Below are positions 11,310 through 63,265 of a stretch of DNA of 64,000 bases, in pieces. The notes under the pieces were generated by a model. The model did no database searches, was not told the DNA's origin, and was given only the letters and a program-made list of their open reading frames with translations. The stretch spans positions 62,001 through 126,000 of IMG/VR virus record IMGVR_UViG_3300029908_000004. The stretch is one strand, 5' to 3'. The position numbers and the translations under genes were made by a program. Within the stretch, counting starts at the first letter, position 1, and each line of letters opens with the position of its first letter.

Positions 11310-12836
11310 TTACACGTCTTTTAGGACGGTGAATGAATCCTTTCGTTTCCTTCTATGACAATTTGTACACATTATGAACTCTTTTGTATCATTTTTACAA
11401 TTGTATTCTTCCCTGATAGTGGTTTTTACCATTCCATGAGGATAATTTATCTCATTACTGTTTTTATCCTTCATCCTAACCCCAGTAGTGAACATCATAG
11501 TTCCTTTACATTTGGGGCACTTTGCTGCTATACGGATAACCTTGGATTGGTCGGAGAAGAATCCAGTTTTCAGAAGTCTATTGACATGTTTATACCAAAC
11601 TTCACAGATTGCTTTCTTAATTGAATCTTTACCATAACTAGGGTTCTCTAGTTGATAGTCAAAAGCACGCTCCAACATTCTTTTATATTCATTACTGGGG
11701 GTGAATCCCCACTCGGTGAGATCGTCGCCAGTAACCAATGGTTTGGGGAATCCAAGAGTCTTAGCAGCAGTTATATACCCTATGGTATTCTCCATATTTA
11801 TAGAGATGATCTTAGCATTAACTAGAATCCATAGTAATTCTATAGCTCTGTTTATATTTGGCTTGTTGGCAAGCTTCCTTCTTTCACATAGTGAAGTAAG
11901 CCTATTAGACCTAAGATCAATTACTATTTGCACCATCTCTGAGATTGTATTTCTGTCTTCGTTAGAGAATTTGAGATATTTTAATACATCCCCAATATTC
12001 CAATATATACCAGTTGTATACAAAAGACAACACCATGCTAAGATTGGATCTTTAACTTGTCCAATCTTGTCGAAATTGACAGTTTGATCTACTATATTAA
12101 AAAGGGAATTTGGTTGTTGCTCATAGATTTTGGTGTATAAATTAGTTCTCTGAAGACAGAACAAAGCGTCACCGACGTGTTCCCCCGTTATGAGCTTTGT
12201 CATTTCGTCTCTAACACGTTCTCGCGAAACCCTAATCATCAAATTTGCATTATTACGAATTGCTCGTAATGTCTCAAATTCTATCTGAAACCCAAGTTGT
12301 GACACGAATCTAACAGCTCTTAACATTCGAAGAGGATCCTCTTGGAAACGAATGTTAGGGTCACCAATACAACCAATCCTTCGTATTGATATATCATATT
12401 TACCACCAACATAATCAATAACTTCCATTGACTCTGGGTTCATCAATATCCCATTCATCCTAAAATCTCTACGACCAGCGTCAATACATTCTTGATCAGT
12501 AAATATAACACTATCCGGTCTACGAAGGTCTGAATACTCAGTAGAATCACTTCTCAATGTAGCTACTTCTATGGAGTGATCTACACCATCTATATCAACA
12601 AGGACTTTTACAACTCCGAATTCTACTCCAATTGGAATATTGTGGGGAAATAGATCCATTACTTCATTGGGTTTAGCTGAAGTACATATATCAAAGTCTT
12701 TCGGTTCCTTGTTCATAAGAAGGTTTCTAACACACCTACCTACAAGGAAGACTTTGAAGTTATTTTGCTTTAACGTCTTAGCTACTTTCCTAGCAGCTTC
12801 TAAACTACTTATCTCTGGCATATATTCCTTGTTCAA
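11310..12836 (-). CDS. cca: tRNA nucleotidyltransferase (CCA-adding enzyme, class II) with C-terminal zinc ribbon
   Basis: VGRCVRN...KDFD, EVATLR, RRDF, EDPLRMLRAVRF, VSRERVRDEM motifs; C-terminal CPKC...CTNC. Confidence 0.9.
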   Translation of the reverse strand: MNKEYMPEISSLEAARKVAKTLKQNNFKVFLVGRCVRNLLMNKEPKDFDICTSAKPNEVMDLFPHNIPIGVEFGVVKVLVDIDGVDHSIEVATLRSDSTEYSDLRRPDSVIFTDQECIDAGRRDFRMNGILMNPESMEVIDYVGGKYDISIRRIGCIGDPNIRFQEDPLRMLRAVRFVSQLGFQIEFETLRAIRNNANLMIRVSRERVRDEMTKLITGEHVGDALFCLQRTNLYTKIYEQQPNSLFNIVDQTVNFDKIGQVKDPILAWCCLLYTTGIYWNIGDVLKYLKFSNEDRNTISEMVQIVIDLRSNRLTSLCERRKLANKPNINRAIELLWILVNAKIISINMENTIGYITAAKTLGFPKPLVTGDDLTEWGFTPSNEYKRMLERAFDYQLENPSYGKDSIKKAICEVWYKHVNRLLKTGFFSDQSKVIRIAAKCPKCKGTMMFTTGVRMKDKNSNEINYPHGMVKTTIREEYNCKNDTKEFIMCTNCHRRKRKDSFTVLKDV

Positions 12837-17995: not shown

Positions 17996-19237
17996 TCATT
18001 TTAAGATACCTTTGAAGGACTCAACTGACATTCTGTCCTCGAACCTTGGTCCAAACGAGATTGTGTTGATAGTCGGTTCCAACAAATTCTTTAGAACAGA
18101 CAAGTAAGTGCTTAGACTCGGGGGTTGTATAAACAAACCCTTCTCTGAGTCGATTATCTTCAGATAGTCTGTCCACCTGTCCAAATGGGACAAAGCTATT
18201 TCATCTACGCCTTTACAAATCTTAATGGACTTATTGACAAGCCCAATGTCCAAGTGTCCCACCCGAAACTCCCCTTGATACTCGCCTTTCTGGTTATGAT
18301 TTTCTGGCAGTAAACCAGTTAATCTCATATCCTCGGTTGGGAATGGACCCACTCCGTGACGAGTGGCGTAGGTTCTTATACAGCCAATTCTGACTCTGTT
18401 ACCAATGAACCCAGAAATGTTGAGCAAATCATCAGCATTCCTGAAAGTTGTGTTGGTCCATGAGTTATACGGATAGGTCCCATACCACTCATCTAACATT
18501 ACTCCTTGTGCCCCCTCGAACACAGATGCAGTGGATTTTGATAGCAAATCAGAAAGGAACTCTTGTGGCTTTACCTGAGCGTTCCATTTGCTATATATCC
18601 GACTGTGCCATTCAGACCAGTCTTCATTACTATCTACTATGATGTCGTAGTCCTTTTTCCACTGGTCCACTGGTATCTTTTCCAATGTCGGAAGCAGCTC
18701 TTTCAGCTTGGCGAGGTACACCTTGTGAAGGAAGCTCAATTTGCTACGTGTTACCTCTTCTGATTCTATGTCTTTAGCAAATAGGACGTTGTTCCCATAT
18801 TCAATGGAATCACTACGAGTTTGTCCTATTCCTTGTCCACAGCTACCGTGTCTGTTCTTCCCTCTGGCAATTTCTCTCAACCTTCCAAAAGCTATTTGGA
18901 AGGGAGTGACTACCAAGCAATCCCCATCAACAAATGTTCTGTCCCATATATCAGTTATCCCAAGGGACATTAGATGAGCTGCTTCTCTCATCATGTAGAA
19001 TGGATTGACCAATGTAAACTTGGACAAGTAAGTCTTCACATTGGGTTGTAGCATCCCACTACCAAACTGTTGGAAGGTATGGCTTCTCGATAATTCAACA
19101 ACGTTATGTGCAGCTTGTGGCCCACCGTTGTATCGAACTATCAAATCAGCTTTGTGAGTACGGGTTAGATACTCTACGTGGGCTCCTTTTGCGCAATCGC
19201 CCCATAGCATCCCAGCAACGAGATATGCTATACCCAT
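17996..19237 (-). CDS. adenylosuccinate synthetase-like protein (divergent PurA family)
   Basis: WGDCAKG, VRYNGGPQAAHNV, HGSCGQGIG, FEGAQGVMLD, RTYATRHGVGPFPTE, FRVGHLD. Confidence 0.88.
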   Translation of the reverse strand: MGIAYLVAGMLWGDCAKGAHVEYLTRTHKADLIVRYNGGPQAAHNVVELSRSHTFQQFGSGMLQPNVKTYLSKFTLVNPFYMMREAAHLMSLGITDIWDRTFVDGDCLVVTPFQIAFGRLREIARGKNRHGSCGQGIGQTRSDSIEYGNNVLFAKDIESEEVTRSKLSFLHKVYLAKLKELLPTLEKIPVDQWKKDYDIIVDSNEDWSEWHSRIYSKWNAQVKPQEFLSDLLSKSTASVFEGAQGVMLDEWYGTYPYNSWTNTTFRNADDLLNISGFIGNRVRIGCIRTYATRHGVGPFPTEDMRLTGLLPENHNQKGEYQGEFRVGHLDIGLVNKSIKICKGVDEIALSHLDRWTDYLKIIDSEKGLFIQPPSLSTYLSVLKNLLEPTINTISFGPRFEDRMSVESFKGILK

Positions 19238-19555
19238 TAGTACCTCCATCTCTATTTGAGTTTGTGCTGTAATACTTACATGGATGAAGCATTCCTGATT
19301 ACTTAGTTAAGCACAAGAAGTTGACGTTTCACCTCTCGATTTTCTTATCTAACCATTCAGTGAACACCATGAAACTATCTCTTGGTGTTAACATTGACAC
19401 TACAAGGGTGATAGGGCCTAACAGAACAAATATGACCAAACCGACTACGAATAACAAAGTTCGGTTCCTACGATCACACTGTTCTGTATAGGCCCATATC
19501 CAAGGTAGTGCCATAACAAGACCGAACGCTACCCAGATTTCCACCAAATGCATGG

Positions 19556-22488: not shown

Positions 22489-24111
22489 TTAGCTCGCCCT
22501 GTGCCACCCCTTGGCAGATTTCAGGGCAAAAAGAATGTTCTTAGCTTCTGCTGAGTCTCCTCCAGCCAAACTTTCAGTGTACATTAACATTGCAGCTTCA
22601 GTGTTTCCCTTGTCTGGGTGAAAATCAAGGAATACACCAGCCCTTGGGACTTGTCTATCAGTTAGATTCTGGGCTTTTATCTTTGCCACCGCTCCAATTA
22701 GTTGGTCTCTGTGGTCCCAGATCCACTGTCTCTTCTCATCAGTAATACTGAAGCTACCAATTTCTCCCCTAGCCCCGTTAGCAGGGTTCTCAACAACCAT
22801 CCTGCCAACGGAACCTGAGTACTTACCTGATCCTTCAAGGATCTCCACAACAGGTAGATCAAAAGGATCCGTGTTCTTTACTTTGAACCAATTACCCTCG
22901 CCGACTTTACTATCAACAGACTTGGCGACAATTCCTTCACCATATGGCATTGGTTGAGCAATAACCATATCGTAGAACTCTTCTGGTGACTGGTATCGCC
23001 CTTTCTCAGCACTCACGTACCAGTGCTTGTTGAAAATCCTAACTTCGGCAATGGTATCCTTAAGTAGCGCACGCCGCTCTCCGTATGGCAACTTTGATAC
23101 GTCCCTACCACGGTACTTGAGAATATCCCAAGCAACAAAGGTGGCCTCACCACGGAGCGCCTGAATTTGGCGAGCCTTTTCCGGATAAGCATTTAGGATC
23201 CCTCCTATTCTCCCAGGGCCATCGGGATGGACTAATTCACCTCTTACAAGGGATCCACGTAAATTTGGACCTCTGAACAACTTTCTGGAAGACCACAAAT
23301 TTGATGTGTTACTTATATGCTCCAACTGTGGAAGCCTGTCGTAATATGTCTCCCCTTCTTCTCTATGGCTTCTAAAGGTAGCATAGTTGTCCATGATGAG
23401 TACGTTAGAAAGTGAACCATCATACTTCTGTTCAAATACGTACTCATCTGGGTTGACGGTTTTTAGCCAGTTTCTCAGCTTCGTTCTGTAAGCTGGTTTT
23501 GGTATTACCATGCCTTCGTCTTTCATCGGGACTATAAGCTTTCCCTTCGGAGTGGTCACAAAGGCATAGCGCCCCTTGAATTCGCCAGATGGTATGTTAA
23601 GTTCCCACTGCTCTGTTCCAGGAGGTACCCCCTCAACGACAAGGTCGTAATGCAAGCCAGCTCTGATTGCATTATGAGAGTGGTAATTAATTTTGGCGGG
23701 AAAGGTCCTTTCACCAATCTTAACAATACCGACCTTAGAAAGAAGCAGTGTTTTAATTCCTTTACCGTAACCTTCCTCGATTTCCCCAGAGAAGTCTGTG
23801 ATAAAGTGCGGATCATTCTCGATCGCAAGCGCACGCTTGCCACTGATCGGTAAACCCTTCGGAATCGCGTACTTGGCAAACGCCGGATTAGGCGTGAATT
23901 CATTAAGGGTAGCTCCATCTACTGACCTCGTAGGATACCATCTAGAAGTGTACAATCTAGAACGGGGATACTTAGGTAACAACATAGCATGAAGATTGTT
24001 TTGAACTCTTGGCTGTATAACAGAACCAAAAGTATCAAGTCCGATGTCTAATCCAGTCCTGAGTAGGGCTTTCGATATCGTTTTTACCCATCTCCAAACT
24101 TTGCTTTTCAT
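22489..24111 (-). CDS. ATP-dependent DNA ligase with N-terminal LigD phosphoesterase-like region
   Basis: Motif I EQKYDG, RGELV, AWDIL, EGIVAK, WFKVK and an OB-fold; N-terminal HNAIRAGLHYDL resembles the LigD PE motif. Confidence 0.82.
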   Translation of the reverse strand: MKSKVWRWVKTISKALLRTGLDIGLDTFGSVIQPRVQNNLHAMLLPKYPRSRLYTSRWYPTRSVDGATLNEFTPNPAFAKYAIPKGLPISGKRALAIENDPHFITDFSGEIEEGYGKGIKTLLLSKVGIVKIGERTFPAKINYHSHNAIRAGLHYDLVVEGVPPGTEQWELNIPSGEFKGRYAFVTTPKGKLIVPMKDEGMVIPKPAYRTKLRNWLKTVNPDEYVFEQKYDGSLSNVLIMDNYATFRSHREEGETYYDRLPQLEHISNTSNLWSSRKLFRGPNLRGSLVRGELVHPDGPGRIGGILNAYPEKARQIQALRGEATFVAWDILKYRGRDVSKLPYGERRALLKDTIAEVRIFNKHWYVSAEKGRYQSPEEFYDMVIAQPMPYGEGIVAKSVDSKVGEGNWFKVKNTDPFDLPVVEILEGSGKYSGSVGRMVVENPANGARGEIGSFSITDEKRQWIWDHRDQLIGAVAKIKAQNLTDRQVPRAGVFLDFHPDKGNTEAAMLMYTESLAGGDSAEAKNILFALKSAKGWHRAS

Positions 24112-24329
24112 GTTGTCACTCCCGGTATTTTCCACAAATCTAGGTTACATTTATACTCCGGGTAGCGCTTCATCAGAAGAAGAATACTTGGTAATATAAT
24201 TGCGTAGTTCTCTTTATCTGTACTAATTATAGCTTGAGCCATAGCTGTTAAGAAGTCTTCAGCGTTATAGGGCTCAGCGTAAAGGATACCGTAGGCCCAT
24301 ATCAAAACGTTTCGGTCCTTCTCAGGCAT

Positions 24330-33788: not shown

Positions 33789-35804
33789 CTCATCCTTCTC
33801 CTTGTGACAATACTACGTAGTTTCAGGGTGCCGTTCCCATCCAAGAGAACGGCACCAAGAAGTTACTGGATTGGGGTTGTTGGCGTCTGTTCTGTGTGGA
33901 ACAACTTACTCGCATAACCCTTGGTGGCGTCAATGCCGTTCATCAATCCATCAGAAACGGATTGATAATCTGCCAGCCGTTGTTCCCTTGAACGCAGGCT
34001 GAAGTAAGCACCGGTGCCAATGGCACCTATGCTAAGTATTCCGAGGAACCATCTCAACATGATCTCAACTCCTTATTGGCCAAAGCCGGAGGGTTTTGTT
34101 CGTAGTGTTTTTCAACGTCTTAGTGCCTTCTTCAAGGTTTCCCAACAGATGACAATCAAAACGAGAGAACACAGGAATACAGCCACCAAAAAAACTAGAT
34201 GGCATATAGTACCCAAAGTGACAATTAACACAGCGAGCATGTTTTTCATGCCACATCCTTTAGCTGAATGGACTTTCCACGCAGTTTGTTCAATGGCCAT
34301 ATAACACAGAAGATAACGATTGCATTCACAATCGTAGCTCCTCCTGCGAACGTAACTGCGTTAGGATTGTCGATACCGGTATGCCCATAGTTCAGACACT
34401 CGGTAGTCAAAAGGGTGAGCACTTTGTGATTGGCAACCCAGTTGAAAAACTTCCCTTGGTTGACCCAACGACTTAGTTTAAATACTTCGGCTATTGCATC
34501 CAAATGGGATAGCATCAGCCAAGATAGAGCAGACAACCCCATGCCTGCTATGAAACTGGATCTAGCAGTGGGAGTTAACGAACTTATTCCTGCCATACTC
34601 TCTCCTACGTTTCTAAGCTAACGTCACTGTCCAATTCTTCGTCTGCTCGGAACTTGGAGTTGTGGTTCACTACGTTGGCTACCCCTAACTCGAACAGCCT
34701 TGTATTCACCACTGTTCTAGTTAGCTTTACAATCTGTTTAGTAGCAATCTCTTCAACCTTGTTTGGTTCACCAGCTTGTCCAGCTAGCAAACTATCCAGA
34801 ATTGGTATACTGATGGGATCTTGATCAGTCCCATCAAGCAAACGTTTCCTCTTGCGATAGGAAACAAATACCCAGACACCACCAACTTCAGCTAGCTTCA
34901 TTCCGACAGCTGCCAACAGAAGGTTCAGCATGACGCCTCACTTTCTGGCTTCTACAAAGTTTTCTACAAAGTTAGCGTTGCCACTGGAAGGTGAACTGGA
35001 GGACACTGATTGCTTGGTGACTTTCTCACCAAGAGCAAGTGCCATGGAACTTTCCTTCTGTACGCAGGTAGCCCCGCATATAGGACGAGACCCAGAGATG
35101 TGTAGGATAGCCGGATCCCAACTGGATAGTAGGATCCCTTCCTTCGTTGGAACGGATACTAACCAAGTGTTAGTTTCACCCTTGGTGGTGCCACAGACGG
35201 CACACTTATACCCAATGTAAACGTATGGATTCGAAGCGTGGAATTCCATTACCACCCCCAATGTCCGGAAACGATCAAATGATTCAGTCTTACTAATAGC
35301 CCTGAATACATTGACCAGAAGATGGTTATAACGAAGAACGCTGGTACCACAACAAACGCTACGTGTTTGGTGTTCTCCGTATAACGCTCTATCTTCTTGG
35401 CTTCCGGTTCCGGTTCCTTCGAGAGTTTAAGCAGTCCCTGTAAACCGGGGACTTGCATATAAACCTTGTCCTGTTCGCATTCGTAAGTTGCGCAGAACTC
35501 ACAGATTGCAGATTCGCAGTCTAACCAAAGTCTCTGGAAGATAACATCTCCCTGTTTGAGACCTGCTGCTTTGTGCTTCTTCGCTAGCTCAATGTTTCTG
35601 GCTAGCCTTTTGGACAGAGAATGTAAAGCTGTCTTGCGAACGACAGTAAGTTTCTTATCATCGTACCAGCTCCCCATTCTTTCCAGAATATCCAGCATGA
35701 GCCAGCTCCTTTCCTATACTAATGATGAAGACAAATTGTTGGTACGCTAAGTACCAACAATTTAATCTCCATCCGTATTGGATGGTCTAACAGACAACAA
35801 AACA

Positions 35805-37205: not shown

Positions 37206-38345
37206 TCAACCAACGTTGTTGGTTGGTTGTTGTGTCTCCTCTGTTGAGGAGTTTGATGGGAGAATCCTCCCATATACTCCTTTGTCGATGGCCTTGATGT
37301 AACCTCTGTCCTTTAACGATTGGACAGTGGCATATATCGGTTGCTTTCTTGTACCGATGTCCATGCCACGACTGGCGAGTAGTTTGATGAGAGCCAGAAC
37401 ATCGAATGTTTTCTCTGGTTCTTTCTCCCATTCCTCCATAATCGTCCTTACCATATCCGTTGGCTTGTAAGGACTCAGTATGCGGGAATGTGTTTGTTTC
37501 TTTGGCTCGGTAGCCTTCGCTAAAGCTTGTTTCTGGAAGACAGACAAGAATGGTTCTACCTTCTTGCTCTCTTCCATGGCTAGGTCATACCAGTTTAACA
37601 ACTCGTTGACCATTGACATTTGTTGGACTGCCTCAGCCTTAACAGCTTCGGCAGTATCGATTATTCGCCGGGCTTCCGCGAACTGCTCCTCACAGCGAAT
37701 AATCCGCCGCTCTAAATCCTGCTTGAGTTCGCGAGCGCCGGCTATTCTTAAATCCAGAATACTCGGCATCTCTTCACTCCCCTTCGTTGGTTTAACAGTA
37801 TTCACTTCACCCAACTCACGTTGTTCTGCCAAGTAGGCGTTCATTGCTGGCATCCCGTTTTCGTTACGAATGCGGGCTGCTTCAGCAAGAACTTCTTGTT
37901 TATAAGTGAACACTTGACCTTTGGGTTTACTCTCCCGAACCTTCCGTATTGGATGATACACCAATACTTCTGGTTCCGTCTCCACCTTGGGTTTTGGCAC
38001 AAGCTTGGCCAACTCCTCAAGATTACGTAGAGCTTGCTCTTCCACAGCAGACTTGCTAACAACTAGCAACTGCTTGTGTACAGATTTCTTCGCCTTCTTC
38101 TTTACCACTTTGGCGACCAAGGTTACTGCCTTGTAAGGTTTCGCCTTTGGCTTGATGCCAAGCATCCCCTTTAACTCAGCCAAGTGGTTAGCGTATGACC
38201 TATACGCTGAAGGCGTCTTTGACAAAACGAATGTTTCGCCGTTGGATAGCGTGTATACATAGTGCTTCTTCTGCCTTACGCAGGTAGCACCATCCCGCTT
38301 TAAGATAGCTTCGATTTGGTCCTTAGGCGGCTTAACTGTTGACAT
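37206..38345 (-). CDS. multi-domain protein: HicA-like N-terminus, coiled coil, C-terminal winged helix
   Basis: LKRDGATCVRQKKHYVYTLSNG..FVLSKTPS HicA-like pattern; IYATVQSLKDRGYIKAIDKGVY wHTH-like. Confidence 0.6.
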   Translation of the reverse strand: MSTVKPPKDQIEAILKRDGATCVRQKKHYVYTLSNGETFVLSKTPSAYRSYANHLAELKGMLGIKPKAKPYKAVTLVAKVVKKKAKKSVHKQLLVVSKSAVEEQALRNLEELAKLVPKPKVETEPEVLVYHPIRKVRESKPKGQVFTYKQEVLAEAARIRNENGMPAMNAYLAEQRELGEVNTVKPTKGSEEMPSILDLRIAGARELKQDLERRIIRCEEQFAEARRIIDTAEAVKAEAVQQMSMVNELLNWYDLAMEESKKVEPFLSVFQKQALAKATEPKKQTHSRILSPYKPTDMVRTIMEEWEKEPEKTFDVLALIKLLASRGMDIGTRKQPIYATVQSLKDRGYIKAIDKGVYGRILPSNSSTEETQQPTNNVG

Positions 38346-38783: not shown

Positions 38784-39575
38784 CTAAGCTTTCAGGTTGA
38801 GCACCTCTGCTTGGTCCACTCGGAACTTGCCACATTCGAGGCTTCGTACGCTGCCGAGTCCACAGTTGCTACTCATGGCGAGAATACTGAGGATGTCATC
38901 CTCATTGACCTTGCCCGGAACGAATCGGTACACGAAGTGAATGCGACTTCCTTCTGGAGCCACTTCACTGTCATGGACGATTGATGCCGCGCCTTTGGGT
39001 GTTTGAACACGACCCATGAACGTCTCGAAGTGCGTTTTCACTGGTTCGCCGGCTGGCGTTACCATGTAGACATGGTTCGGATGGTCGCTGTCGATCAACG
39101 ATTGACCGACTGCTCTGACACGCCCACCTTCGGAGAAGTTACCCTTGGTGCCGATTTTGCCCTTGAATAAGCCTGTTCTGCTGGCTGCCTGCTTGAGCAT
39201 GGCCTTCATCATCCAGTCACCAAGCCAGACGCCCTTGTCGCTGTGCCGTAACACGTTGACGCCGTAAGATTCCACTTCGACAATCTCTGGCGCTGCCGCC
39301 GTTACCGAAGCTTCACTGCTTGGGTCAACCTGAATGGTTGGTTTCTTCTCACCAACCTCTTGTTTGAGTATACGCCTAACGGCCTCCTCGAACAAGATTT
39401 TCTGTTCTTCCGTTTCCTGCGGTAGCTTCATCTGAAAGGCGACGAATGCTCGTACACCTTCTTCACCGCCGGGTTGTCCACCGACAACCTTCGTTAAGAA
39501 TGTTGCGTGAATTTCCAATGATGCAGTGAGGCCTATAAAGCGTCCCTCCACATCGTCCGATGTAAATGTAGCCAT
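38784..39575 (-). CDS. stand-alone Cas7/RAMP-like RNA-binding protein (putative effector of the adjacent array)
   Basis: N-terminal strand TFLTKVVGG; VWLGDWMMKAMLKQAA (cf. RAMP IPGSSLKGALR); SEVAPEGSRIHF (cf. E.VP.G..F); C-terminal Gly-rich loop GLGSVRSLECGKF (cf. GLG..RS.GYG.F); no other cas gene in the window. Confidence 0.85.
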   Translation of the reverse strand: MATFTSDDVEGRFIGLTASLEIHATFLTKVVGGQPGGEEGVRAFVAFQMKLPQETEEQKILFEEAVRRILKQEVGEKKPTIQVDPSSEASVTAAAPEIVEVESYGVNVLRHSDKGVWLGDWMMKAMLKQAASRTGLFKGKIGTKGNFSEGGRVRAVGQSLIDSDHPNHVYMVTPAGEPVKTHFETFMGRVQTPKGAASIVHDSEVAPEGSRIHFVYRFVPGKVNEDDILSILAMSSNCGLGSVRSLECGKFRVDQAEVLNLKA

Positions 39576-39592: not shown

Positions 39593-40008
39593 TAAAACTG
39601 TTGAGATGGAAGCGGTGTCACGATGTTTTGCCGCCTCGAAGTATCAGATCACGAGTCGTCAAGTTTTGCTGCTCAGTTCAGTCTTGTAGCGTCTCATCTT
39701 ACCTTGCCACCACGTCTCGTTGAGCCTTGTCTCAACTTGTCACTATGTGGAATTTTGTAATGTCGAGCTGCAATGTTACATGTAATGGAATGTAACCTTG
39801 CCGCCGCGTCCCATACCGCTTTGCATCGGCAGATGTTATCTTGCCGCCAAGTTATACTCTGTGATGTCTAGCCGCTAAGTTAGAACTTAACTCGACATGT
39901 TCTGCCGCTTCGATATATGACATCTTGGATTGCCACTACATACGGAAGAATCACATAACGGACTGCCGCTGTGTATTGACATGATGTATACAGCTTCGGT
40001 TTGCCTCT
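39593..40008 (-). repeat. non-CRISPR guide-like array: 12 x 8-nt RGYGGCAR repeats with 5n-nt pentamer-phased spacers
   Basis: Repeats start (plus coordinates) at 39628, 39666, 39704, 39737, 39765, 39798, 39841, 39869, 39902, 39930, 39963, 40001; spacers are 30,30,25,20,25,35,20,25,20,25,30 nt; all 57 spacer pentamers are NNYNN on the minus strand. Confidence 0.9.
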
Positions 40009-41631: not shown

Positions 41632-41775
41632 TCCTGTTAATACCAATAGATAATACCAATAACACTAGGATAGAGATAACCCTGTTAATCCTGATAACAC
41701 TTTAACAGTGTAACACTTTAACAGTAACAGTGTAACCCTGTTAATACTTAACTCTGATAACCCTGTTAATACTAG
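41632..41775. repeat. AT-rich cluster of short direct repeats (candidate replication origin)
   Basis: CCTGTTAAT x4, TAACACTTTAACAG x2, TAATACCAATA x2 in a non-coding gap. Confidence 0.6.
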
Positions 41776-42226
41776 GTCTCTCCATCCTAATACACCGATA
41801 TCATCTCGTGTGTAAAGACTTTAAGGTTTGTGGTGGTATATTCACACCACTAATCCCAGCTACTCACAGCTGTAAGCTGTTGTAATTGTTGATGTTGCTT
41901 CACAAGTACACTGGTCTTGGGCCCGTAGCATGTACCGGAAGATAGGCCCTCACGGGACGCTACCGACTCTCATCGGGGTGAGCGAGACTCACCTACTATA
42001 CAAGCTTGGACACTTGTATAGTTTCGAATTATCATCTATTCACTAGATATTGGACAATCTAGCTACTGTTTATCCTATACTATATAATAGTAAGGGGACA
42101 AAAGAATCGCCCCTACAGGTAGACAGCAAGGAAGCATCCCTACTGAACACCGACTACGCCTAACAGACGGCTCATACTATTATGGTAGTACCTATGGATC
42201 GGTACAATATGACCTCTTTGTCTCTT

Positions 42227-45200
42227 TTATCCCACCTCATCAGGATTAGGTTCTTCGAATGCCTCATAATTCTTCTGAGGCAACAAAGACTCGTGTGATT
42301 CTCTCAGAATCACCATTCCATCTTCCATTGTGAAGCCACCGAACTCTATCCCCTCGTCCTCTAGCCTTACAGGGATAGTTCCAATAGCTTCCATAGTGCT
42401 TAACCGATACACAATACCAGCCTCCTTGATCACAACATCAACCTTAGCTTCGCCAAGGTCATAAGCAAACTCCTCGTCCAAATCCACTGGTACTACAAGC
42501 CCAGTTATTGGACGCAGCTTACGAGTCTTGATATCCATATACTTGATATCCCGACTCGCCTGAATAATCGCATTACCCATGCGCTTAGTCCACAACATAC
42601 CATCTGGGAAGCTCTTTCGCTTCCCCATCTCCTCTCCCTCAACAACATACTGAGCATCTGCGTAGATGGTGTGATACAGATAGCAGAGCAGCTCTACAGC
42701 CATCTGCTTAACAGTGTCATCATCAAACTGTGCCAGATACTCAGCACAATCATTCTCTACCTTCTTATACGCTTCGTTAAGACCCTCTCTGGTCATTGGA
42801 TTACCAGCGCCAAGGATAGCTTTCCAGCCACCTCTCCACACCTGTATATAACCAGGCGCATCTTCACGCTTCCGACCGGGATTGGAACCGAGATAGACAG
42901 CGATGTCCGGGCTATGCCCACCCATCTCAAACACAAATGCTTCATCGGCAGGAGCTACTGATATCCACTCACGCAGCTTCAGACGATCTATCAACACATC
43001 ACGTTTATGTGTTAAGTCTTTCAGACTCTTACACATAAGCGAGTCATAAATGTGATAATCAGCCTTAGCTACCTTAGTGGTGGGGATTCTAAGGGTATCC
43101 TTCCCACTAATACGCTTACCCATAGTAGCAATATATGGATAGATCAGAGTCCCTTCCAATCCAATGTTCTCAACAGGTTCTCTACCTTCCTGTAAGCCAC
43201 TATGGAACTGACGTACAGCATCGCTAACGTTACCAAGTTGAACCAAGATGTTTGCATCCAGAACAACGCCATCAATGACATGTTCCAGATTAGTTTCAAA
43301 CTTCCTCATCTGATAAAGAGGTCTCATCACAAACCACTCACGGGTTGCTTCGAGGTCAGCAATCTTAGCAAGGTTACCAAACCTCTTAGCTTCAGCGATT
43401 TCAGCATCGAGCTGTTCAAACATATATGCCCGATCCGCTGCATTGGACAACCTATTGTCAATCATATTTGCATTAACAACAGGTCCAATTCCAGCACCGC
43501 TCCTCTGCTTCCTATCAATCTGATAAGCAAAGTGCCGATTGTTATACCATTCCTTCACGCCGCGACCGGGGATTTTATAACCTTCAGCTTCTGCTTCTTC
43601 ATCAAACTGACGACGAAGCACAGCTCCTGACTTCTTGATCTTAGCAGTTTCTGGATACGGGTTATCGTTCAATTCCTTGAACTTGTTAACCCAGAATTCA
43701 TCAAATACTACGATGAAGCGATCATCCAGATCACCACCACCTAATCTGGCTAACACTTTGTTACAGCCAGCGCCGAGAATGATAATACCTTTCCCAGCGA
43801 ACCTAGCATAACGCTGATGGTGGATATTCTTGAGAATCACGAATGCATTCTGATTCTCATTTGGTTGTCTATAACAGGCAACCAAAATACCAGCAGGGAT
43901 GTCCATCATACAGCACTCATCTTTACCAATGAGCTCATCCTCAATTGGTAACAGATTCCCTTCCGTATCATGCATATACGGGTCATGGATACAATATCCA
44001 CTAACAGCTACCTTATCCAATGGGATACGTCCACGCTCCATTTGCATGACACGATACATCATGAAGTTGTTAACCCTACGACCCAATCCCGGGTACTTAA
44101 GAGCAGACCATCCATTGATGACCGCTTCTCTCAGCACCCAAGCATCCCAATCAATCATTGAGATCCCATCATTGTAGTAATGCTCATCATCACGTACACT
44201 GTTGATATACTTAACCAACAGCTTCGTGATTTCCTTGTTATCCATCGTCTTGTTCCAATAATCCAGACGGAACAGCTGAGCTTGATAATCAATCATGCCC
44301 GGACGCTCAAAGCGGAAGTTATCCCAGCTTTGCATATCACTGAACGGCATGATCTTCTTCAGCTTACCAAAACAGCCGAAGTAGAACCGCTCATTCTTAA
44401 TCATAGTCTTGGACCCATACACTACGAAGTCATACTCCAAATCCTCCTTATAGACGAAGTTACCCTTCGGCATACCTACATACCTCTCACCAATAGTGCA
44501 CTGCCATGCATCTCCAATACGTGGATGCTTGCTAAGTCCAACAGACTTTGCACCATGTTCTCCTACCAAGCCGCCACCATCCAACCGAGCAGCGTCATCA
44601 TCTGTCAGTCCATCGATGCTATTAAACTTCACGGTAATGATGGCACCGTTATCCAAACGATACACACCAATACCAGCGACAACATCGAACTTAACCGGTT
44701 TACCTAACGCATGCACCCAAGTTGGTGCCATCTCACGGTTTAAATACTTACCCGCTTTCAGGCATTTCTCCAAATCATTGAGCTCAATCCAGATCCCAAC
44801 ACTTCTCAAATCCACTAAATTTGTCATGGCATCAGGAACGAGATAAGCAGTAGCCCTGTCATCTCTCTGATAACCAAACAAACACTTATAGTGGATTCCC
44901 TCGTATTGATACCCACTGTTCATAACTCGCTCTGCTACCGCAGAGTCATCAGTTACAAACTCTATGTAGGTACAGTCTAATGCGTCTTCCAACAGCCATG
45001 GAACTTCCGCATACGGCCCATAAGCTCTGAAGAACTTAGGATCATCGTCAAGTTTTGACCCAAACTTAACTTTATTACGACGATGAGCCTCTGTATACGG
45101 AGTCCGAGTAACAAGCTTCTTGTTACTCTTCATCCATTCAACAACAGCGATCTTCTTTACTCCTCCATCATCCATCTTTACTACCTCCTTTACAACATCC

Positions 45201-46000
45201 TTCTTAACCGGTTCAGTAGGAACCGGAGGATTCAATTTAGTCCAGAGCTGCTCAGGGCTAATACGCACCATAGGTGCATTAACCCGAAGGCAATAACGCC
45301 ATCTGTTGTTAACAGACTCATACATCACACACCAACCACTCGTTAGATACCAAACAGTATCTAACGCATTAGGTTGGAGTGCTCCCTTAACCTTCTCATT
45401 CAAGAAGGCAAATAGTCTCTCCTTAACAGGTACCTCAATAACCGGTACCTTCTCAACAACAGGTTCAATCCGAGGCTCACCAAGCTTGGTAAATGCCTCA
45501 TCCACCACGGTATCAGAGACATATTGGTCGCCAAGCAGTTTCTTTACAATCACATCCTGAGATACCTCGTTCAATTGCTTATCAGCAATAGAACGCATAC
45601 CCCAGCGATTCGCATCAATGTTATGAGCGACAAACGTTGTGCCAATGTCCCAACTCTGGAACCCCGGCATAGACAAAGAAGGCTTACCCACTTCCTTATT
45701 TAGGTAATCCAACAAATTGATTACCTTAGGAGTTTCAGCCTTCTTCTCCACAACTGGCTCAGCCGGCTGAGATACAGGTACCTTCACCAACGCCTTCTCA
45801 GCTTCCAATAGAAGTGTTACCTTAGTCACATTGGACCGGATCCACTTCTTAGCCTCCTCATTCCTAACCGCCCAGATATCGGTATTTTCATAGAACATCA
45901 CCGACAAACCACCGATGACAAACAAAGTCTTGTTACCATCCTGTTTGTCCGCAGAAGCACCCATAGCAGCAAACAACGCAACCAACGTATTAGAATCCAT
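42227..46000 (-). CDS. single-subunit two-barrel RNA polymerase-like protein (YonO / cellular RdRP-like family)
   Basis: Motifs in the family order: RLDGGGLV, AWQCTIG..GMPKG, YRQP, LGGGDLDD, IGPVVN, HVIDG; about 1257 aa; start at MDSN after GGAG. Confidence 0.75.
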   Translation of the reverse strand: MDSNTLVALFAAMGASADKQDGNKTLFVIGGLSVMFYENTDIWAVRNEEAKKWIRSNVTKVTLLLEAEKALVKVPVSQPAEPVVEKKAETPKVINLLDYLNKEVGKPSLSMPGFQSWDIGTTFVAHNIDANRWGMRSIADKQLNEVSQDVIVKKLLGDQYVSDTVVDEAFTKLGEPRIEPVVEKVPVIEVPVKERLFAFLNEKVKGALQPNALDTVWYLTSGWCVMYESVNNRWRYCLRVNAPMVRISPEQLWTKLNPPVPTEPVKKDVVKEVVKMDDGGVKKIAVVEWMKSNKKLVTRTPYTEAHRRNKVKFGSKLDDDPKFFRAYGPYAEVPWLLEDALDCTYIEFVTDDSAVAERVMNSGYQYEGIHYKCLFGYQRDDRATAYLVPDAMTNLVDLRSVGIWIELNDLEKCLKAGKYLNREMAPTWVHALGKPVKFDVVAGIGVYRLDNGAIITVKFNSIDGLTDDDAARLDGGGLVGEHGAKSVGLSKHPRIGDAWQCTIGERYVGMPKGNFVYKEDLEYDFVVYGSKTMIKNERFYFGCFGKLKKIMPFSDMQSWDNFRFERPGMIDYQAQLFRLDYWNKTMDNKEITKLLVKYINSVRDDEHYYNDGISMIDWDAWVLREAVINGWSALKYPGLGRRVNNFMMYRVMQMERGRIPLDKVAVSGYCIHDPYMHDTEGNLLPIEDELIGKDECCMMDIPAGILVACYRQPNENQNAFVILKNIHHQRYARFAGKGIIILGAGCNKVLARLGGGDLDDRFIVVFDEFWVNKFKELNDNPYPETAKIKKSGAVLRRQFDEEAEAEGYKIPGRGVKEWYNNRHFAYQIDRKQRSGAGIGPVVNANMIDNRLSNAADRAYMFEQLDAEIAEAKRFGNLAKIADLEATREWFVMRPLYQMRKFETNLEHVIDGVVLDANILVQLGNVSDAVRQFHSGLQEGREPVENIGLEGTLIYPYIATMGKRISGKDTLRIPTTKVAKADYHIYDSLMCKSLKDLTHKRDVLIDRLKLREWISVAPADEAFVFEMGGHSPDIAVYLGSNPGRKREDAPGYIQVWRGGWKAILGAGNPMTREGLNEAYKKVENDCAEYLAQFDDDTVKQMAVELLCYLYHTIYADAQYVVEGEEMGKRKSFPDGMLWTKRMGNAIIQASRDIKYMDIKTRKLRPITGLVVPVDLDEEFAYDLGEAKVDVVIKEAGIVYRLSTMEAIGTIPVRLEDEGIEFGGFTMEDGMVILRESHESLLPQKNYEAFEEPNPDEVG

Positions 46001-46387
46001 AACACACTCCATGCCCAGAAGGGCATCTCCGTTAGTGGTATGCTTTTCACATCCACGTTTAAGCGTATCTCGTATAACAATACGAGACAGATGTTTCTAG
46101 AGGTTGTTCATCCAATAACCAATAGCAGTTAATACTTCTTCCTTAGTGCCAACGCATACATTCAAAGGCACCGCTATCTTGCTTCCGCCCTCTTCAATAA
46201 ATAGGGCACGGTATTCACCACTCTGTTTATCACGAGCAATGGTGACACGTTGGGAGAAGAACACCCTTCGTACATCAATATCAGACAACGACATTCTATT
46301 CCTCCTTGTTACAGAGCTACCTCTTATAGCAGGTATGCTCAAAGAGTAATACTAGGGACATAACCTAGTATTAAACTCTCAGCATAT

Positions 46388-49294: not shown

Positions 49295-49411
49295 CTATAC
49301 TATCAATCCATTACACTTTCTGGGTGGCTATAAGACTTTATCCAGTACGTCTATACTAAATATATTTATAGATCCTTTGGATATTTCTAGTTCTGATGGT
49401 ATAATAAAGAC
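49295..49411. promoter_or_regulatory. divergent promoter region at the strand switch
   Basis: AT-rich gap between minus and plus gene blocks; TGGTATAAT extended -10 just before 49412; TATACTAAAT at 49352. Confidence 0.55.
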
Positions 49412-56523: not shown

Positions 56524-58551
56524 ATGAGTGAGAAAGTAGATATAACTTTAGATAGTTTCTTATCTGAGGTTAATAAAAGAAATACAAACAAGGATGGAAG
56601 CGAGAGAGACCCTAGATTGCTCGAACGCTTCCAGAACCCTATATGTCAGGATTGTCACGCCCGATATAAAGAGAAGTACCCGGGTATTCCGTTCAAGATT
56701 AAGTGTAATGGTGTTTATGATGATCCCGATTATGTAATTATAAGGGAGAAGTGGAAAGAAACTTATCCAGATGAGGAACCACCAGATTTAGAGACTATTA
56801 AAGAAATTACTGATCCGTCTTACTGGGCGAGAAAACATATCTATAGAAAAGATCATAGAGGTGACTTGGTTCCTTTCGTTCCTCGTTGGTATCAGGAATG
56901 GATTCTTCGTTGTACAGCAATGCAGAAAGTTGATAGATGTGGTAGGGGCACCGGGAAAACTACTGTAGGTGTAATTGAAGAATTACATAAAGCTATCACT
57001 AGAAAGAATTATGATATCCTTGTTGTAAGCCCTGCTGATTCACAGTCAGAAAAATGGTTCACTGAGATTCTAGTGCAAGTAGAAAACTCTCCATCATTGA
57101 GAGAAGCTCTAGCCCAGAAGAAGCAACAGCCTTATAAAATATTTAGATTTAATAATGGGTCTACTATCTCCATCTTCACTGCGGGTTCCGCTTCAGGTCG
57201 TGGTGCTGATTCTATTCGTTCTCAATCGCCTAGACGTGTTCGTTGCGAGGAGCAGGACTATCTAGCAGAAAAAGATTGGGGAGCGATAGAACCTCTTCTA
57301 AATAGATATTCAGATTCTGAGTTCCATGGAGCTTCAACCCCTACTGGTTCACGTAATAAGTTCTGGAACATGTGTACCAAATATCCTAGATATAAAGAAT
57401 TCTATTTCCCAGTTACTGTTCTTCCAGACTGGAGTCCAGAGAAAGAAGAACAGTGTATTTTAGAAGCTAAAACCATGGATAGATATCGCCATGAATATTT
57501 AGCTGAATTTGGTGACCCCACACAAGGTGTATTCAAAGGCATCTTCGTAGATAGAGCAAAAGGGGTATATGAAGACCCACAACATCCACACACTAAAGGA
57601 TATGATACTTGTCAGTATGACCCAAACCTAAGGTACTTTATGGGCGTGGATTGGAATGGTGAAGGTACTGGTACCCGTATACGTGTATTGTCTTATGACA
57701 CAATTAGTAGAATAAGACGTTGTGTAACAGCACATACTGTAGATGAAGCTACTTGGACAGTTAATAAGTCTATTGATGCTATTCAGATATTAAATAAGAA
57801 GTGGCATTGTGAAAAGGTATTTATAGACAGGGGTTATGGTCAGGCACAAGACGAAATGATTCGTATGCGAGGAGTAACAGCTCCCCCAACTGATGCAGAT
57901 ACCCGTAGACTTCGAGATATAATAGCCATAGACTTCGGTGCTAAATTAATAACTAATAAACTTGTTCCATTAAGAGATCCTAACTCTAAGTACTTACCCG
58001 AAGACAAGAATGAACTAGAACGCCCAACTAAGCCGTTTATGGTTGAAGGCGCTGTAATGGCTATAGAAACAGGTCTTGTTACATTCTGGCAAGGGGACTC
58101 TTTATTGGATGAACAATTAAGAGCTTACAGAGTAAAGAACTGGTCAGCACACGGGTATCCGTCTTCTTATGAAGTAGAAGGAGACTGTGGAGACCACGAT
58201 TTAGACGCGTTCATGCTGGCACTCCTAGCAATTGAAATGACGTATGGTATGTTCAAGACTCCAGAAGAATTAAAAAAGTGGACTCAAATTGTATATGTTG
58301 GAAACTTCGGAGCTAATATGGGATTCGGTAAGTCCTCTTCTGATCCAATGAATAAGAAGAGAGAAGACGCAGGCATCCCTAACAGAACACAACCAACAAC
58401 TACTTCTCCGAAAGATGAATATAGATTAATGTATCTAATGAAGAGTGGGTCTTTAATTGCCCCCGCTAGAAGTAGTTCTGGTAGAATGCAAACAGGATCG
58501 AGAACAAGCATATTTAGAAAATCCCCAGGTAATAAAGATAGGAATTATTAA
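56524..58551 (+). CDS. terL: terminase large subunit
   Basis: PRWYQ Q-motif, Walker A GRGTGKT, Walker B-like RVRCEEQD, motif III ASTP, nuclease MGVDWN, FIDRGYG, DHDLDA. Confidence 0.92.
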   Translation: MSEKVDITLDSFLSEVNKRNTNKDGSERDPRLLERFQNPICQDCHARYKEKYPGIPFKIKCNGVYDDPDYVIIREKWKETYPDEEPPDLETIKEITDPSYWARKHIYRKDHRGDLVPFVPRWYQEWILRCTAMQKVDRCGRGTGKTTVGVIEELHKAITRKNYDILVVSPADSQSEKWFTEILVQVENSPSLREALAQKKQQPYKIFRFNNGSTISIFTAGSASGRGADSIRSQSPRRVRCEEQDYLAEKDWGAIEPLLNRYSDSEFHGASTPTGSRNKFWNMCTKYPRYKEFYFPVTVLPDWSPEKEEQCILEAKTMDRYRHEYLAEFGDPTQGVFKGIFVDRAKGVYEDPQHPHTKGYDTCQYDPNLRYFMGVDWNGEGTGTRIRVLSYDTISRIRRCVTAHTVDEATWTVNKSIDAIQILNKKWHCEKVFIDRGYGQAQDEMIRMRGVTAPPTDADTRRLRDIIAIDFGAKLITNKLVPLRDPNSKYLPEDKNELERPTKPFMVEGAVMAIETGLVTFWQGDSLLDEQLRAYRVKNWSAHGYPSSYEVEGDCGDHDLDAFMLALLAIEMTYGMFKTPEELKKWTQIVYVGNFGANMGFGKSSSDPMNKKREDAGIPNRTQPTTTSPKDEYRLMYLMKSGSLIAPARSSSGRMQTGSRTSIFRKSPGNKDRNY

Positions 58552-60964: not shown

Positions 60965-63265
60965 ATGAGTAATAGTAAAACAGCAAATACATTAGATATT
61001 GAAAAAATAGGACGTCAACAGCGTTTAGAAAATTGGTTAGAAAGAGACCAATCTAAATCTATTTCGTCCTTCAAACGCCGTATAAACGGAAAGACATTAG
61101 AGCCCTTTGTGGAAGGTTTAGGAGATAGGTCCAAGATGAAGATGCCTCTTCCTTGGAGACCTATGTCTACCCGTTCTGTAGAAGATGAAAAAGCAGCAGA
61201 TGGTGGAAGGGCTATTGACCCTTCATCAGCTTCTATTAAGCTAGCCAAGGCTAGTGATTATATGGGTACTTATCATGGCCACAATGGAATCTTACGTCCA
61301 GAATATGACATGTTAGAACCATTCGTTATTGCTGATACCGAGGTATACGTCAAGCAAGCAATCGTTCGTAGACAAGCTTTAATGTTCCGGAATGGGTTTG
61401 AATTAGTTAGTGACTTTGACAAGGATACACAACAAGGACAAAAGAATGTAGATTATATACAGGCTCGTTTTGATGTAATGGAGTATGTGACAAATAGGGC
61501 CACAGAGATCTTTCTAAAAGACATTTTGTATAATCTTGAATTATGTTCTAATTGTTTTCTGCGGAAGATTCGTGATGAGAAAGCATCGCCCGGTGTAAAG
61601 CAAGATAATAATAATAAAAGAATTCCTGTTGCTGGGTATCAAATCATTCCAGCACATCAAATAATGCCTTATCTAAAGAGTGGTGTTATTATTAAGTGGC
61701 GCAGATACTTCGATACCGGTATGCCATTCGAAGACATCCCTCTTGAAGATATTATACATTTGAAGTGGGATGTTAAGCCAAGTCACATCTTTGGCACTCC
61801 ACGTACAATTGGGGTTAGAGATGATATATTTGCGCTTCGCCGGTTGGAAGAGAACATAGAGCTCTTATTTATAAACCATCTATTTCCTTTATTCCATGTA
61901 AAAGTTGGTAATGAAAAAGCTCCGTGTACTTATACTTCAGACGGTAACTCAGAAATAGATCTAATCCGATATCAGATCGAAGCCATGCCAAAAGAGGGTA
62001 TCTTCGTTACTGATGAAAGAGTTGAGATAGAAGCCGTTGGTGCTAGCGGGGAATCTCTTGATACTAAGGACATCATTACCCATTTAAAGGGAAGGGTGTT
62101 TACAGGTCTAGGGGTATCCCCTTTAGACATGGGCGAAGGGGACTCGGCTAATAGAGCTACCGCTGATAATATCTCCCAGAATCTGAAAGATGCTATAAAA
62201 GCGGATCAGGAAACATTTGCCCATTTAATTCGTATCTGGATATTTAAAGAGTGGTTTCTAGAAGCTCCTTATTCATTGTCTGTTCAAAGAGCTGTGGCAT
62301 CTACTCATCTAGCGTTCCATGAGATAGATTTGGATAACCTGATTAAAGAACAGAATCATATTATCCAGCTATACACCAACCATCTTATTACCGAAACAGA
62401 AGCTCGTAAGAAGATACATAAGAAGCCTATGGATAACTCCATGCGTAAAGAAACCCATTACAAGCAGCACATCGTTGACTTGGTATGGGAAGAAGCTGAA
62501 GCTAAAGCTGATGCCCAGATTAAGATTACCGAAGCTCAAACTGAACAACAGAAGGCTTTACTTACCCATCAGACTAAAGAAACAGAAAAGGGTGCTTCAA
62601 CTCAAATGTCTCTATTAAAGGCCGAAGCCGAAGCAGAAGGAAAGAAAGCACAGGCCCAAGTAATAAAGGCGGAAGCTCAGCACAAAGTCTTGAAAGCTAA
62701 GACTGCCCATGCTATAGCTACTGGTGGTGGGAAGGCTGTGAAGAAAGCCACACCATCAGCTAAGACAACTAAGAATAAGAATATGCCTACTAACCAACAT
62801 GGTACTAACCCCGGACCAACGAAGGCTAAAAGCTCTCTGGAATTCATGAAACTCCTAAAAGATAGGCTAACAGAGCTTCGATCTAACGTAATTAACCTTG
62901 AACAATGGTCAGTAGTATCAGCAAAAGTGATAGATGATTTAAATTTGGAATTTGAGGACTCCCAAACCATTGATGACACAGAGAATTCCTATACTAATCA
63001 GATACGAACGGGATTAGATAGACTAAAGAATATAGTTGGACTAACCCACGACCCAGAAATCTTAAGTATCTTGTTAGACAGCTGGCTTGAATCAGAGGAA
63101 TTAGAAGATGTCGAACACACAGCGGTGGAATCAGTTACCGGAAGGCTGGAGGACAGTGAAGCACCCAACAACGAGAGTGCCATTGGACCAAGCAATTCAG
63201 AACCCAGCGATAATCCCACGAGAGGGAAGACCAACAACGAAGACTCCCTTACCACAGTCGAATAG
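60965..63265 (+). CDS. portal protein
   Basis: EDIIHLKW...IFGTP, GLGVSPLDMGEGDSANRATA, HLITETEARKKI portal-type motifs; position after terL. Confidence 0.85.
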   Translation: MSNSKTANTLDIEKIGRQQRLENWLERDQSKSISSFKRRINGKTLEPFVEGLGDRSKMKMPLPWRPMSTRSVEDEKAADGGRAIDPSSASIKLAKASDYMGTYHGHNGILRPEYDMLEPFVIADTEVYVKQAIVRRQALMFRNGFELVSDFDKDTQQGQKNVDYIQARFDVMEYVTNRATEIFLKDILYNLELCSNCFLRKIRDEKASPGVKQDNNNKRIPVAGYQIIPAHQIMPYLKSGVIIKWRRYFDTGMPFEDIPLEDIIHLKWDVKPSHIFGTPRTIGVRDDIFALRRLEENIELLFINHLFPLFHVKVGNEKAPCTYTSDGNSEIDLIRYQIEAMPKEGIFVTDERVEIEAVGASGESLDTKDIITHLKGRVFTGLGVSPLDMGEGDSANRATADNISQNLKDAIKADQETFAHLIRIWIFKEWFLEAPYSLSVQRAVASTHLAFHEIDLDNLIKEQNHIIQLYTNHLITETEARKKIHKKPMDNSMRKETHYKQHIVDLVWEEAEAKADAQIKITEAQTEQQKALLTHQTKETEKGASTQMSLLKAEAEAEGKKAQAQVIKAEAQHKVLKAKTAHAIATGGGKAVKKATPSAKTTKNKNMPTNQHGTNPGPTKAKSSLEFMKLLKDRLTELRSNVINLEQWSVVSAKVIDDLNLEFEDSQTIDDTENSYTNQIRTGLDRLKNIVGLTHDPEILSILLDSWLESEELEDVEHTAVESVTGRLEDSEAPNNESAIGPSNSEPSDNPTRGKTNNEDSLTTVE

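Follow-up and report, generated by a model that had tools for sequence, protein, structure and literature searches.

The DNA analysed here, referred to as the window, is a stretch of 64,000 nucleotides from the virus record IMGVR_UViG_3300029908_000004, a genome of 215,291 bp assessed as complete by CheckV, in which the window represents bases 62001-126000. The source phage inhabits peat, and the stretch is present in at least 19 peat metagenome runs. The minus strand of the window carries the gene of P0001, a single-subunit two-barrel RNA polymerase (RNAP)-like protein whose metal-binding loop reads DxDD in place of DxDGD. The open reading frames (ORFs) of the window were translated with genetic code 11 only, and the gene and the relevant segments of its product are located as follows.

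42227..46012, minus strand: gene of P0001, single-subunit two-barrel RNA polymerase-like protein; one ORF with an ATG start, 1261 amino acids
45158..46012, minus strand: N-terminal extension of P0001, residues 1-285, delimited by alignment, profile match ranges and self-comparison
44408..44581, minus strand: motif block of the beta-like barrel, D478-G479 (DGGG), Q504-C-T506, K516-G517 and K535, from conservation, spacing and a weak RDR2 alignment
43862..43870, minus strand: R715-Q-P717, the R-x-P motif of the beta-prime-like barrel, from conservation and an hhalign comparison with YonO
43721..43732, minus strand: metal-binding loop D761-L-D763-D764, from the DNA, the family alignment and independent contigs

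The original prediction, made on the letters of the DNA, had placed this gene at 42227-46000; the coordinate 42227 was correct, whereas the other end fell 12 nt short of 46012. Every motif that it listed was found and in the order claimed, namely DGGGLV (residues 478-483), AWQCTIG (502-508), PKG (515-517), YRQP (714-717), LGGGDLDDRF (757-766), IGPVVN (842-847) and VIDG (912-915). The minus-strand DNA of the loop reads ggt ggt ggt gat ctg gat gat cgc, and the codons gat-ctg-gat-gat of D761-L-D-D764 occupy 43732..43721, the exact position at which DLDD had been reported. Contigs from three independent peat runs (X7, X9 and X12) span the loop with 0 differences and no indel. These contigs, together with the occurrence of DxDD throughout the family described below, rule out an assembly error as the source of DLDD.

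Searched alone, P0001 returned no meaningful match in Pfam, PHROGs or PDB sequences, and no match by tblastn against 50,697 phage records. The Pfam model PF05183 (RNA-dependent RNA polymerase, RdRP) did not match P0001 even at E 1, nor was it found in a search of the phage's own genome. In IMG/VR and among JGI metagenome contigs, scans recovered the window's own phage and nothing else, and none of 185,579 species genomes scanned held a relative. A word-based search retrieved four relatives with 38-55% identity to P0001; a five-sequence profile found nothing among PDB sequences, and a profile search of 1.84 billion representatives gave 161 clusters (50% identity), 123 of them with E<=1e-10 and 76 with E<=1e-30. 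The family proteins are mostly 900-1050 amino acids long, and the ten members looked up were all metagenomic, the named ones being called "hypothetical protein" throughout. The relative P0005 (910 amino acids) matches PF05183 with 25.0 bits, above the curated gathering cut-off of 23.8, over the stretch aligned with YRQP...GGGDLDD of P0001, and five of 48 diverse relatives match the same model, with a best E of 1.5e-10. These sequence matches place the family on the margin of the PF05183 model. The broad family alignment was too divergent for deriving search patterns. Residues 1-285 of P0001 are common only to its three closest relatives and are missing in the family bulk of about 900-1050 residues; they contain a weak internal repeat, EPVVEK...L..[YF]LN.[EK]V (self-comparison E 0.026), and linkers rich in P, E, V and K.

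The loop was compared across 151 retrieved proteins by hmmalign. D-x-D-D occurred in 114 of the 114 proteins that cover the loop, P0001 included, usually in the context GG[GA]D-x-DD, so that the alignment of homologues at this position upheld what had been noticed in a single protein. DxDD is an invariant signature of the whole metagenomic family and not a peculiarity of P0001. A MAFFT alignment of 115 sequences, about 17-56% identical to P0001, left D761, D763 and D764 as the sole invariant columns, with K516, K535, R715, P717 and D914 conserved at 90% or more. The DxDxD pattern is treated as the universal signature of two-barrel enzymes, including cellular RNAPs, RdRPs, PolD and phage enzymes (PMC2919709, PMC7824862, PMC10770324), and the canonical spacing (NADFDGD/DxDGD) is absent from P0001, where three Asp residues are present at an altered spacing. 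When the P0001 family profile was aligned by hhalign with YonO, the RNAP of the Bacillus prophage SPbeta, LGGGDLD-DRF paired with LLQFDNDGDKA with a one-residue gap at the Gly. HMMER paired GGgDmD.Ds with SGGDLDgDL of maize RDR2, again with the gap at the Gly, in an alignment that alone is non-significant (E 0.56). Since both alignments open the gap at the Gly, the most economical reading is that D761, D763 and D764 would represent Asp1, Asp2 and Asp3 and that the Gly has been deleted. In YonO the Asp triad is essential, the 3D>3N mutant being inactive (PMC5467207). The presence of DxDD throughout the family speaks in favour of an active site that works rather than one that has decayed or been repurposed, and an Asp triad, RxP motif and lysines strictly kept across such divergence have the look of an active site under purifying selection.

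The fold was predicted by AlphaFold2. With an alignment of only five sequences the model was unusable (predicted local distance difference test, pLDDT, 54.6), and an alignment of 75 sequences was used instead, giving a model of residues 285-1261, with the N-terminal extension outside it, at pLDDT 91.0 and a predicted template modelling score of 0.90. The model contains a pair of double-psi beta-barrels forming one active-site cleft. A Foldseek search of the PDB ranked QDE-1 best (E 4e-14), followed by maize and Arabidopsis RDR2 (RDR2 E 2e-12) and, at the next ranks, by P74 gp62/P32 gp64, which are P23-45-type non-virion RNAPs (E 1e-6), P23-45 gp96 and gp66 of the crAss-like phage phi14:2. The fold comparison gave the following values, each with the number of residues.

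ZmRDR2: 17.6; 624 residues
QDE-1: about 14; 644-667 residues
P32 gp64: 13.5; 432 residues
P23-45 gp96: 10.4; 350 residues
Largest subunits of Pol I/II/III (model residues 373-716 only): about 8; about 140-216 residues

Fold matches in BFVD were proteins of uncultured phages, some labelled RdRP, and also crAss proteins. The hhalign match of the family profile to YonO (E 7.8e-5, probability 62%) extends over 112 columns of the beta-prime-like barrel, including the RxP motif and the Asp loop. According to the predicted model and the profile matches, P0001 belongs to the RdRP/YonO branch as a two-barrel polymerase made of a single chain. The single-subunit two-barrel identity put forward in the original prediction is thus borne out by the fold match to QDE-1 and RDR2, by the Pfam RdRP matches of relatives and by the hhalign match to YonO, and the comparison with crAss-like RNAPs that had been proposed with it returned the weaker match to phi14:2 gp66. 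The P0001 family appears to be a distant relative of YonO rather than a clear member of the YonO-like RNAPs, and would make up, within the RdRP/YonO branch, a family that had no name before and is known from metagenomes only.

PMC2919709 lists eight residues as invariant in two-barrel RNAPs, and their counterparts were sought in P0001. In the beta-prime-like barrel, R715 is Arg in 111 of 115 sequences and P717 is Pro in 112 of 115; they correspond to R446/P448 of Rpb1 and R962/P964 of QDE-1, and hhalign pairs yRQPN of the P0001 family with lRSPH of YonO. The R-x-P motif lies upstream of the Asp triad, with 46 residues from R715 to D761 (43 between P717 and D761), compared with 45 from R962 to D1007 in QDE-1; across the family the median stretch from RxP to the first Asp is 43, as measured with a regular expression that omits the Gly two residues before the Asp. 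In the beta-like barrel, the column of D478 is Asp in 96 sequences, and G479, K516 and K535 are conserved in 110, 112 and 104, respectively. By spacing, D478 and K516 would fit D709 and K743 of QDE-1 (the Rpb2 set being D837, K979 and K987), and the whole block D478-G479, Q504-C-T506, K516-G517 and K535 is a candidate counterpart of QDE-1 D709, R738 and K743. The prediction had remarked that the usual Q-x-R reads QCT, and this is real: position 506 is Thr in 95 of 115 sequences and aligns to QDE-1 R738, an equivalence that passes through the weak, non-significant RDR2 alignment. Position 504, Gln in P0001, is Arg or Lys in 54 of 115 members and Gln in 19 of 115. Six of the eight superfamily invariants thus seem to be kept in P0001, with one shifted (the third Asp) and one seemingly replaced (Arg by Thr506).

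The closest structural relatives, QDE-1 (2J7N, 7Y7T) and plant RDR2 (7W82, 7EU0) of the PF05183 type, match P0001 over about 590-670 residues and both barrels, and share with it a single chain, the R-x-P motif about 45 residues ahead of the Asp loop and the GG before the first Asp; in addition, some members of the P0001 family exceed the PF05183 cut-off. However, their identity to P0001 is only about 10-12%, their loop reads DYDGD or DLDGD rather than DLDD, and the Arg of the RDR-type FQIR appears as Thr in P0001, which also has a 5-residue insert before KG (in a low-confidence alignment). Unlike them, P0001 is phage-encoded and probably DNA-templated. YonO is likewise a phage enzyme, of about 840-1000 amino acids, matched by hhalign over the beta-prime-like barrel, but with a canonical DNDGD loop. 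The RNAPs of the Thermus phage P23-45 type (gp64 homologues 8F72/8F5M; gp96 8H2M) are smaller than P0001, at about 600 amino acids or as a tape-measure fusion, carry DxDxD (DFDGD in gp96) and have no detectable sequence similarity to it. Gp66 of the crAss-like phage phi14:2 (6VR4) is a two-barrel single-chain phage RNAP as well, whose match is much weaker (Foldseek E 2.5e-4), whose chain has 2166 residues and which is virion-packaged according to the title of the PDB entry, the sole source used here for its DNA dependence; P0001 has no sign of virion packaging.

What consistently accompanies the polymerase gene is the non-coding gap that directly follows it. A long gap (0.6-1.4 kb) follows the gene in every locus that reaches far enough, the loci of relatives being designated by L numbers or by their protein.

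Window: 614 nt
L005: 845 nt
L006: 822 nt
P0002 contig: 753 nt
L010: at least 609 nt without a called gene up to the contig end
L012: 1364 nt

The contigs of L007, L010, L011 and P0009 end 40-660 nt behind the polymerase gene; repeats may hinder assembly there, or a genome end may be nearby. The elements located in the gap of the window, and at the head of the block that holds the gene, are listed below.

42075..42082, minus strand: 8-mer TAGTATAG in the context cttactATTATA-TAGTATAG-g, which may serve as a promoter or cis element and is shared by the gaps of relatives
41830..42070, minus strand: candidate structured non-coding RNA downstream of TAGTATAG, from fold z-scores and compensatory stems
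41633..41777, no strand assigned: iteron-like direct repeats, about five copies of a 16-18-nt unit and three copies of a 15-nt unit
49295..49358, minus strand: two copies of TAGTATAG (49295-49302 and 49351-49358) in the divergent intergenic region heading the leftward block with the polymerase gene

The 8-mer TAGTATAG occurs on the sense strand of the gap in the window and in L006 (7146), L007 (5875), L010 (9251) and L012 (9602), in phages whose polymerases are just 27-55% identical and whose GC content ranges from 43 to 56%. Roughly estimated, any single locus with a gap of about 800 nt would have a probability of about 0.02 of carrying an exact 8-mer on one strand by chance. Twenty exact copies were found genome-wide, 13 of which are intergenic, compared with an intergenic share of 8.9% of the genome, and the 8-mer is often preceded by cTATTATA. 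Of the two copies at 49295..49358, one is 8 nt and the other 64 nt upstream of the first leftward ORF, and the copy at 35714-35721 lies 23 nt upstream of the ORF with its start codon at window 35698; further sites in the window are 4968-4988 and 62989-62996.

Downstream of the 8-mer, the gap appears to encode a new structured non-coding RNA, for which homologous stretches were recognised in L007 (5883-6160) and L006 (7154-7470). Fold z-scores were -4.45 for window positions 41780-42226, which span the candidate, -6.54 for L007 and -5.59 for L006. One stem shows a compensatory change from GGUGAG/CUCACC to GCUAGG/CCUAGC, a 5-bp stem with a GAGA cap is retained in two phages, and GUGA and UUCG tetraloops are exchanged between phages (a GNRA/UUCG swap). 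A GGGCCCAAG block is shared by the window and L006, L007 having GGCCCAAA. MAFFT alignments of the gap sequences were poor, and RNAalifold on three sequences found 11 pairs with double changes and a covariation term of -0.33, a weak covariation support. No Rfam family matched the gap RNA at either the gathering or the E-value thresholds, and the hammerhead-like "CUGAnGAG" look of one gap hairpin found no support in that search. At the distal end of the gap, the position taken by the repeats of the window, L006 has 4 x 31 nt (7445-7636) and L007 has 2 x 35 nt (6136-6221). The sequence of the repeats is thus phage-specific and their position constant, with flanking words resembling CCTAGTA/CCTAGTG; they may serve as an origin or as a set of operators.

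The genome is organised in strand blocks, minus over 1-110.5 kb, plus over 111.4-191 kb and minus again in the final block. The leftward block starts at the divergent switch at about 49.3 kb of the window, and about eight small ORFs precede the polymerase gene within it. In L005, L006, L007, L010 and L012 four to six small ORFs on the same strand precede the gene, opposite-strand genes lie just beyond them in four of these loci (L007 being too short), and the flanking genes are syntenic among the relatives. This arrangement of gene and gap recalls that of SPbeta, where yonO also lies near a strand switch with a long non-coding stretch behind it and YonO starts its operon in that stretch, including an unannotated non-coding RNA (PMC5467207). 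TAGTATAG is not present in the yonN-yonK gap of SPbeta. The late operon of YonO holds structural genes; in the peat phage, by contrast, the large terminase and the portal (window 56524-58551 and 60965-63265) belong to the plus-strand block, opposite to the polymerase gene.

Taking these results together, we consider it probable, at roughly 60%, that P0001 is the active DNA-dependent RNAP of the phage, working with a shortened loop, made early and initiating at phage-specific sites. The established basis for this proposal is the ORF, the loop with its invariance, the fold, the single copy, neither a second copy nor an Rpb1-type barrel having been detected in the 215-kb genome, and the layout of gene, gap, 8-mer, structured RNA and repeats. 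A T7-type RNAP was not detected in the 215-kb genome either, a weak negative given that the control was silent. Residues D761, D763 and D764, with R715/P717, K516, K535 and D478, would form a working two-metal site with a slightly different loop geometry, and P0001 would make RNA on phage DNA as do YonO, which is strictly DNA-dependent (PMC5467207), and gp64 of P23-45, which together with gp96 transcribes phage genes (PMC10770324). Expression of the enzyme would come from the leftward block beginning at the divergent switch (about 49.3 kb), after which the enzyme would initiate at phage-specific sites, for which TAGTATAG is the best candidate. The nearest of these sites would lie in the gap behind the polymerase gene itself, and initiation there would yield the structured leader RNA, with read-through into the downstream leftward genes. 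The catalytic activity, the DNA template, the promoter identity and the timing are inferred.

Several observations weigh against this proposal. Two of the eight two-barrel invariants deviate, the third Asp being shifted and the Arg of the beta-like barrel appearing as Thr506, and P0001 also lacks the Arg or Lys found at position 504 in about half of the family. The enrichment of TAGTATAG is modest, with 20 copies against about 13-15 expected in the genome and 7 against 2.8 in the window; its copies among the late plus-strand genes are antisense (minus strand) and unexplained. Two copies head the block of the polymerase itself, and an enzyme dependent on its own promoter would need a first source. 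The sole RNA run yields two 151-nt contigs, possibly from DNA carry-over. Finally, a 399-residue frame shows a sigma-70 region 2 match below the cut-off (E 0.0185, 12.9 bits, genome 192098-192214); it could be a phage sigma-like factor, which leaves room for a redirection of the host RNAP.

Among the alternatives, the loss of a catalytic metal through the short loop would turn P0001 into a dead or repurposed two-barrel protein, for instance a nucleic-acid-binding scaffold. The missing DxDxD, the apparent replacement of the conserved Arg by Thr and the failure of P0001 itself to match Pfam, PHROGs or PDB sequences would agree with such a fate. Inactivated enzymes, however, normally lose their catalytic residues, and here a family whose members have drifted apart to about 20% identity keeps the three Asp, and no other residue, without exception; R-x-P and the Lys residues are retained as well, and the prediction is of high confidence throughout the fold. 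Because the three Asp, the RxP motif and the lysines are conserved across such divergence, we judge a dead protein to be very improbable. A different question is the template. P0001 might be an RNA-dependent or dual-template RNAP like QDE-1 and RDR2, copying the adjacent structured RNA or other transcripts into double-stranded or antisense RNA; the Pfam RdRP matches among relatives, the structured RNA always encoded beside the polymerase gene and the antisense TAGTATAG copies of the late block, otherwise unexplained, would suit this role. Nevertheless, template choice is not fixed by similarity of fold, the phage relatives reported as characterised are DNA-dependent (YonO, PMC5467207; P23-45 gp64/gp96, PMC10770324) and QDE-1 itself is described in PMC9508822 as accepting DNA templates too, so that we hold RNA copying to be quite unlikely.

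A dedicated origin or primer RNAP appears an unlikely alternative. Promoter, structured RNA and iterons would together constitute a transcription-primed replication origin, as in the T7 primary origin or ColE1 RNA II, and the chief task of the polymerase would be the production of this RNA instead of gene expression in general. The gap of 0.6-1.4 kb in each locus that extends far enough (at least 609 nt in L010), the conserved TAGTATAG within it, the strong structure of its RNA (z -4.5 to -6.5), direct repeats that vary by phage yet hold the same place and a cumulative GC skew minimum nearby (window, about 48-50 kb) all fit this scheme. Yet the turn in GC skew is confounded with the switch of gene strand, the iterons could equally be operator sites and about a dozen further intergenic copies of TAGTATAG exist, which is a better fit to general promoters; moreover, no replication initiator was identified alongside, the neighbours being without informative family matches. 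The proposal of an active, DNA-dependent RNAP with its own promoters is the one we favour. A bolder extension, doubtful at present, is that the DxDD family combines a distinct catalytic solution, in loop geometry and possibly in metal or substrate preference, with a self-contained polymerase-RNA module. Such a module could be a transcription-primed origin or an RNA copied by the enzyme rather than an ordinary promoter with a leader.

The DxDD loop also bears on how such enzymes are searched for. The survey of Chaban et al. filtered candidates by the pattern [RK]xPx{20,100}DxDxD (PMC10770324). As published, this filter is passed by 23 of the 151 family proteins, in each case through a DxDxD outside the catalytic loop, whereas the same filter with DxDD in place of DxDxD is matched by 121 of 151. 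About 85% of the DxDD family would be dropped by the survey filter because it is built around the DxDxD loop. A full-text literature search for DxDD in the context of two-barrel polymerases returned no paper containing it, and a search of supplementary text gave no instance of the loop strings; the 23 families of the PMC10770324 survey may still include one with DxDD. A family of 161 clusters with DxDD in 114 of 114 covering proteins constitutes a natural, strongly selected exception to the universal DxDxD and offers a direct test of how much variation in metal-loop geometry is tolerable. A clade of large peat phages that carry their own polymerase, along with a structured RNA and a cis element conserved among them, would likewise be a tractable new transcription system.

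The surroundings of the gene contributed further, less specific information. About 2.25 kb downstream of the polymerase gene and on the same minus strand lies an irregular GCGGCA-rich array (about 39634-39975), with about eight words of the G[CT]GGC[AT] type spaced 22-94 nt apart in a 311-nt intergenic region and the adjacent small ORF. This is probably the "periodic array" that the original prediction had proposed as a target of the polymerase; its strand and distance were right, but nothing except proximity was found to tie it to the polymerase. Ten ORFs near the polymerase and the array, including 38784-39575, had no Pfam match, and the sole PHROG match among them was a weak one (E 1.3e-4) of the 379-residue ORF 37206-38345 to a family of unknown function. 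The Cas7-like gene mentioned in the prediction accordingly received no support from Pfam or PHROG matches among these ten neighbours.

On the minus strand at window 17996-19249, a 417-residue homologue of adenylosuccinate synthetase was recognised (PF00709, E 4e-55), with phrog_1211 as its best PHROG (E 1e-61), which we take to be the PurZ family. Its presence hints at a 2-aminoadenine (Z) genome, which, if true, would give a reason for the phage to have its own RNAP; no DatZ- or MazZ-like neighbour of this homologue was found by Pfam. Look-alike clusters in the ESM Atlas are labelled Acidobacteriota or Uroviricota, a weak lead to the host. The leftward block also carries two tRNA-Met genes on the minus strand (2032-2108 and 3293-3367), a homologue of tRNA nucleotidyltransferase (11310-12836, E 1.6e-47) and a homologue of ATP-dependent DNA ligase (22489-24135, E 7e-30).

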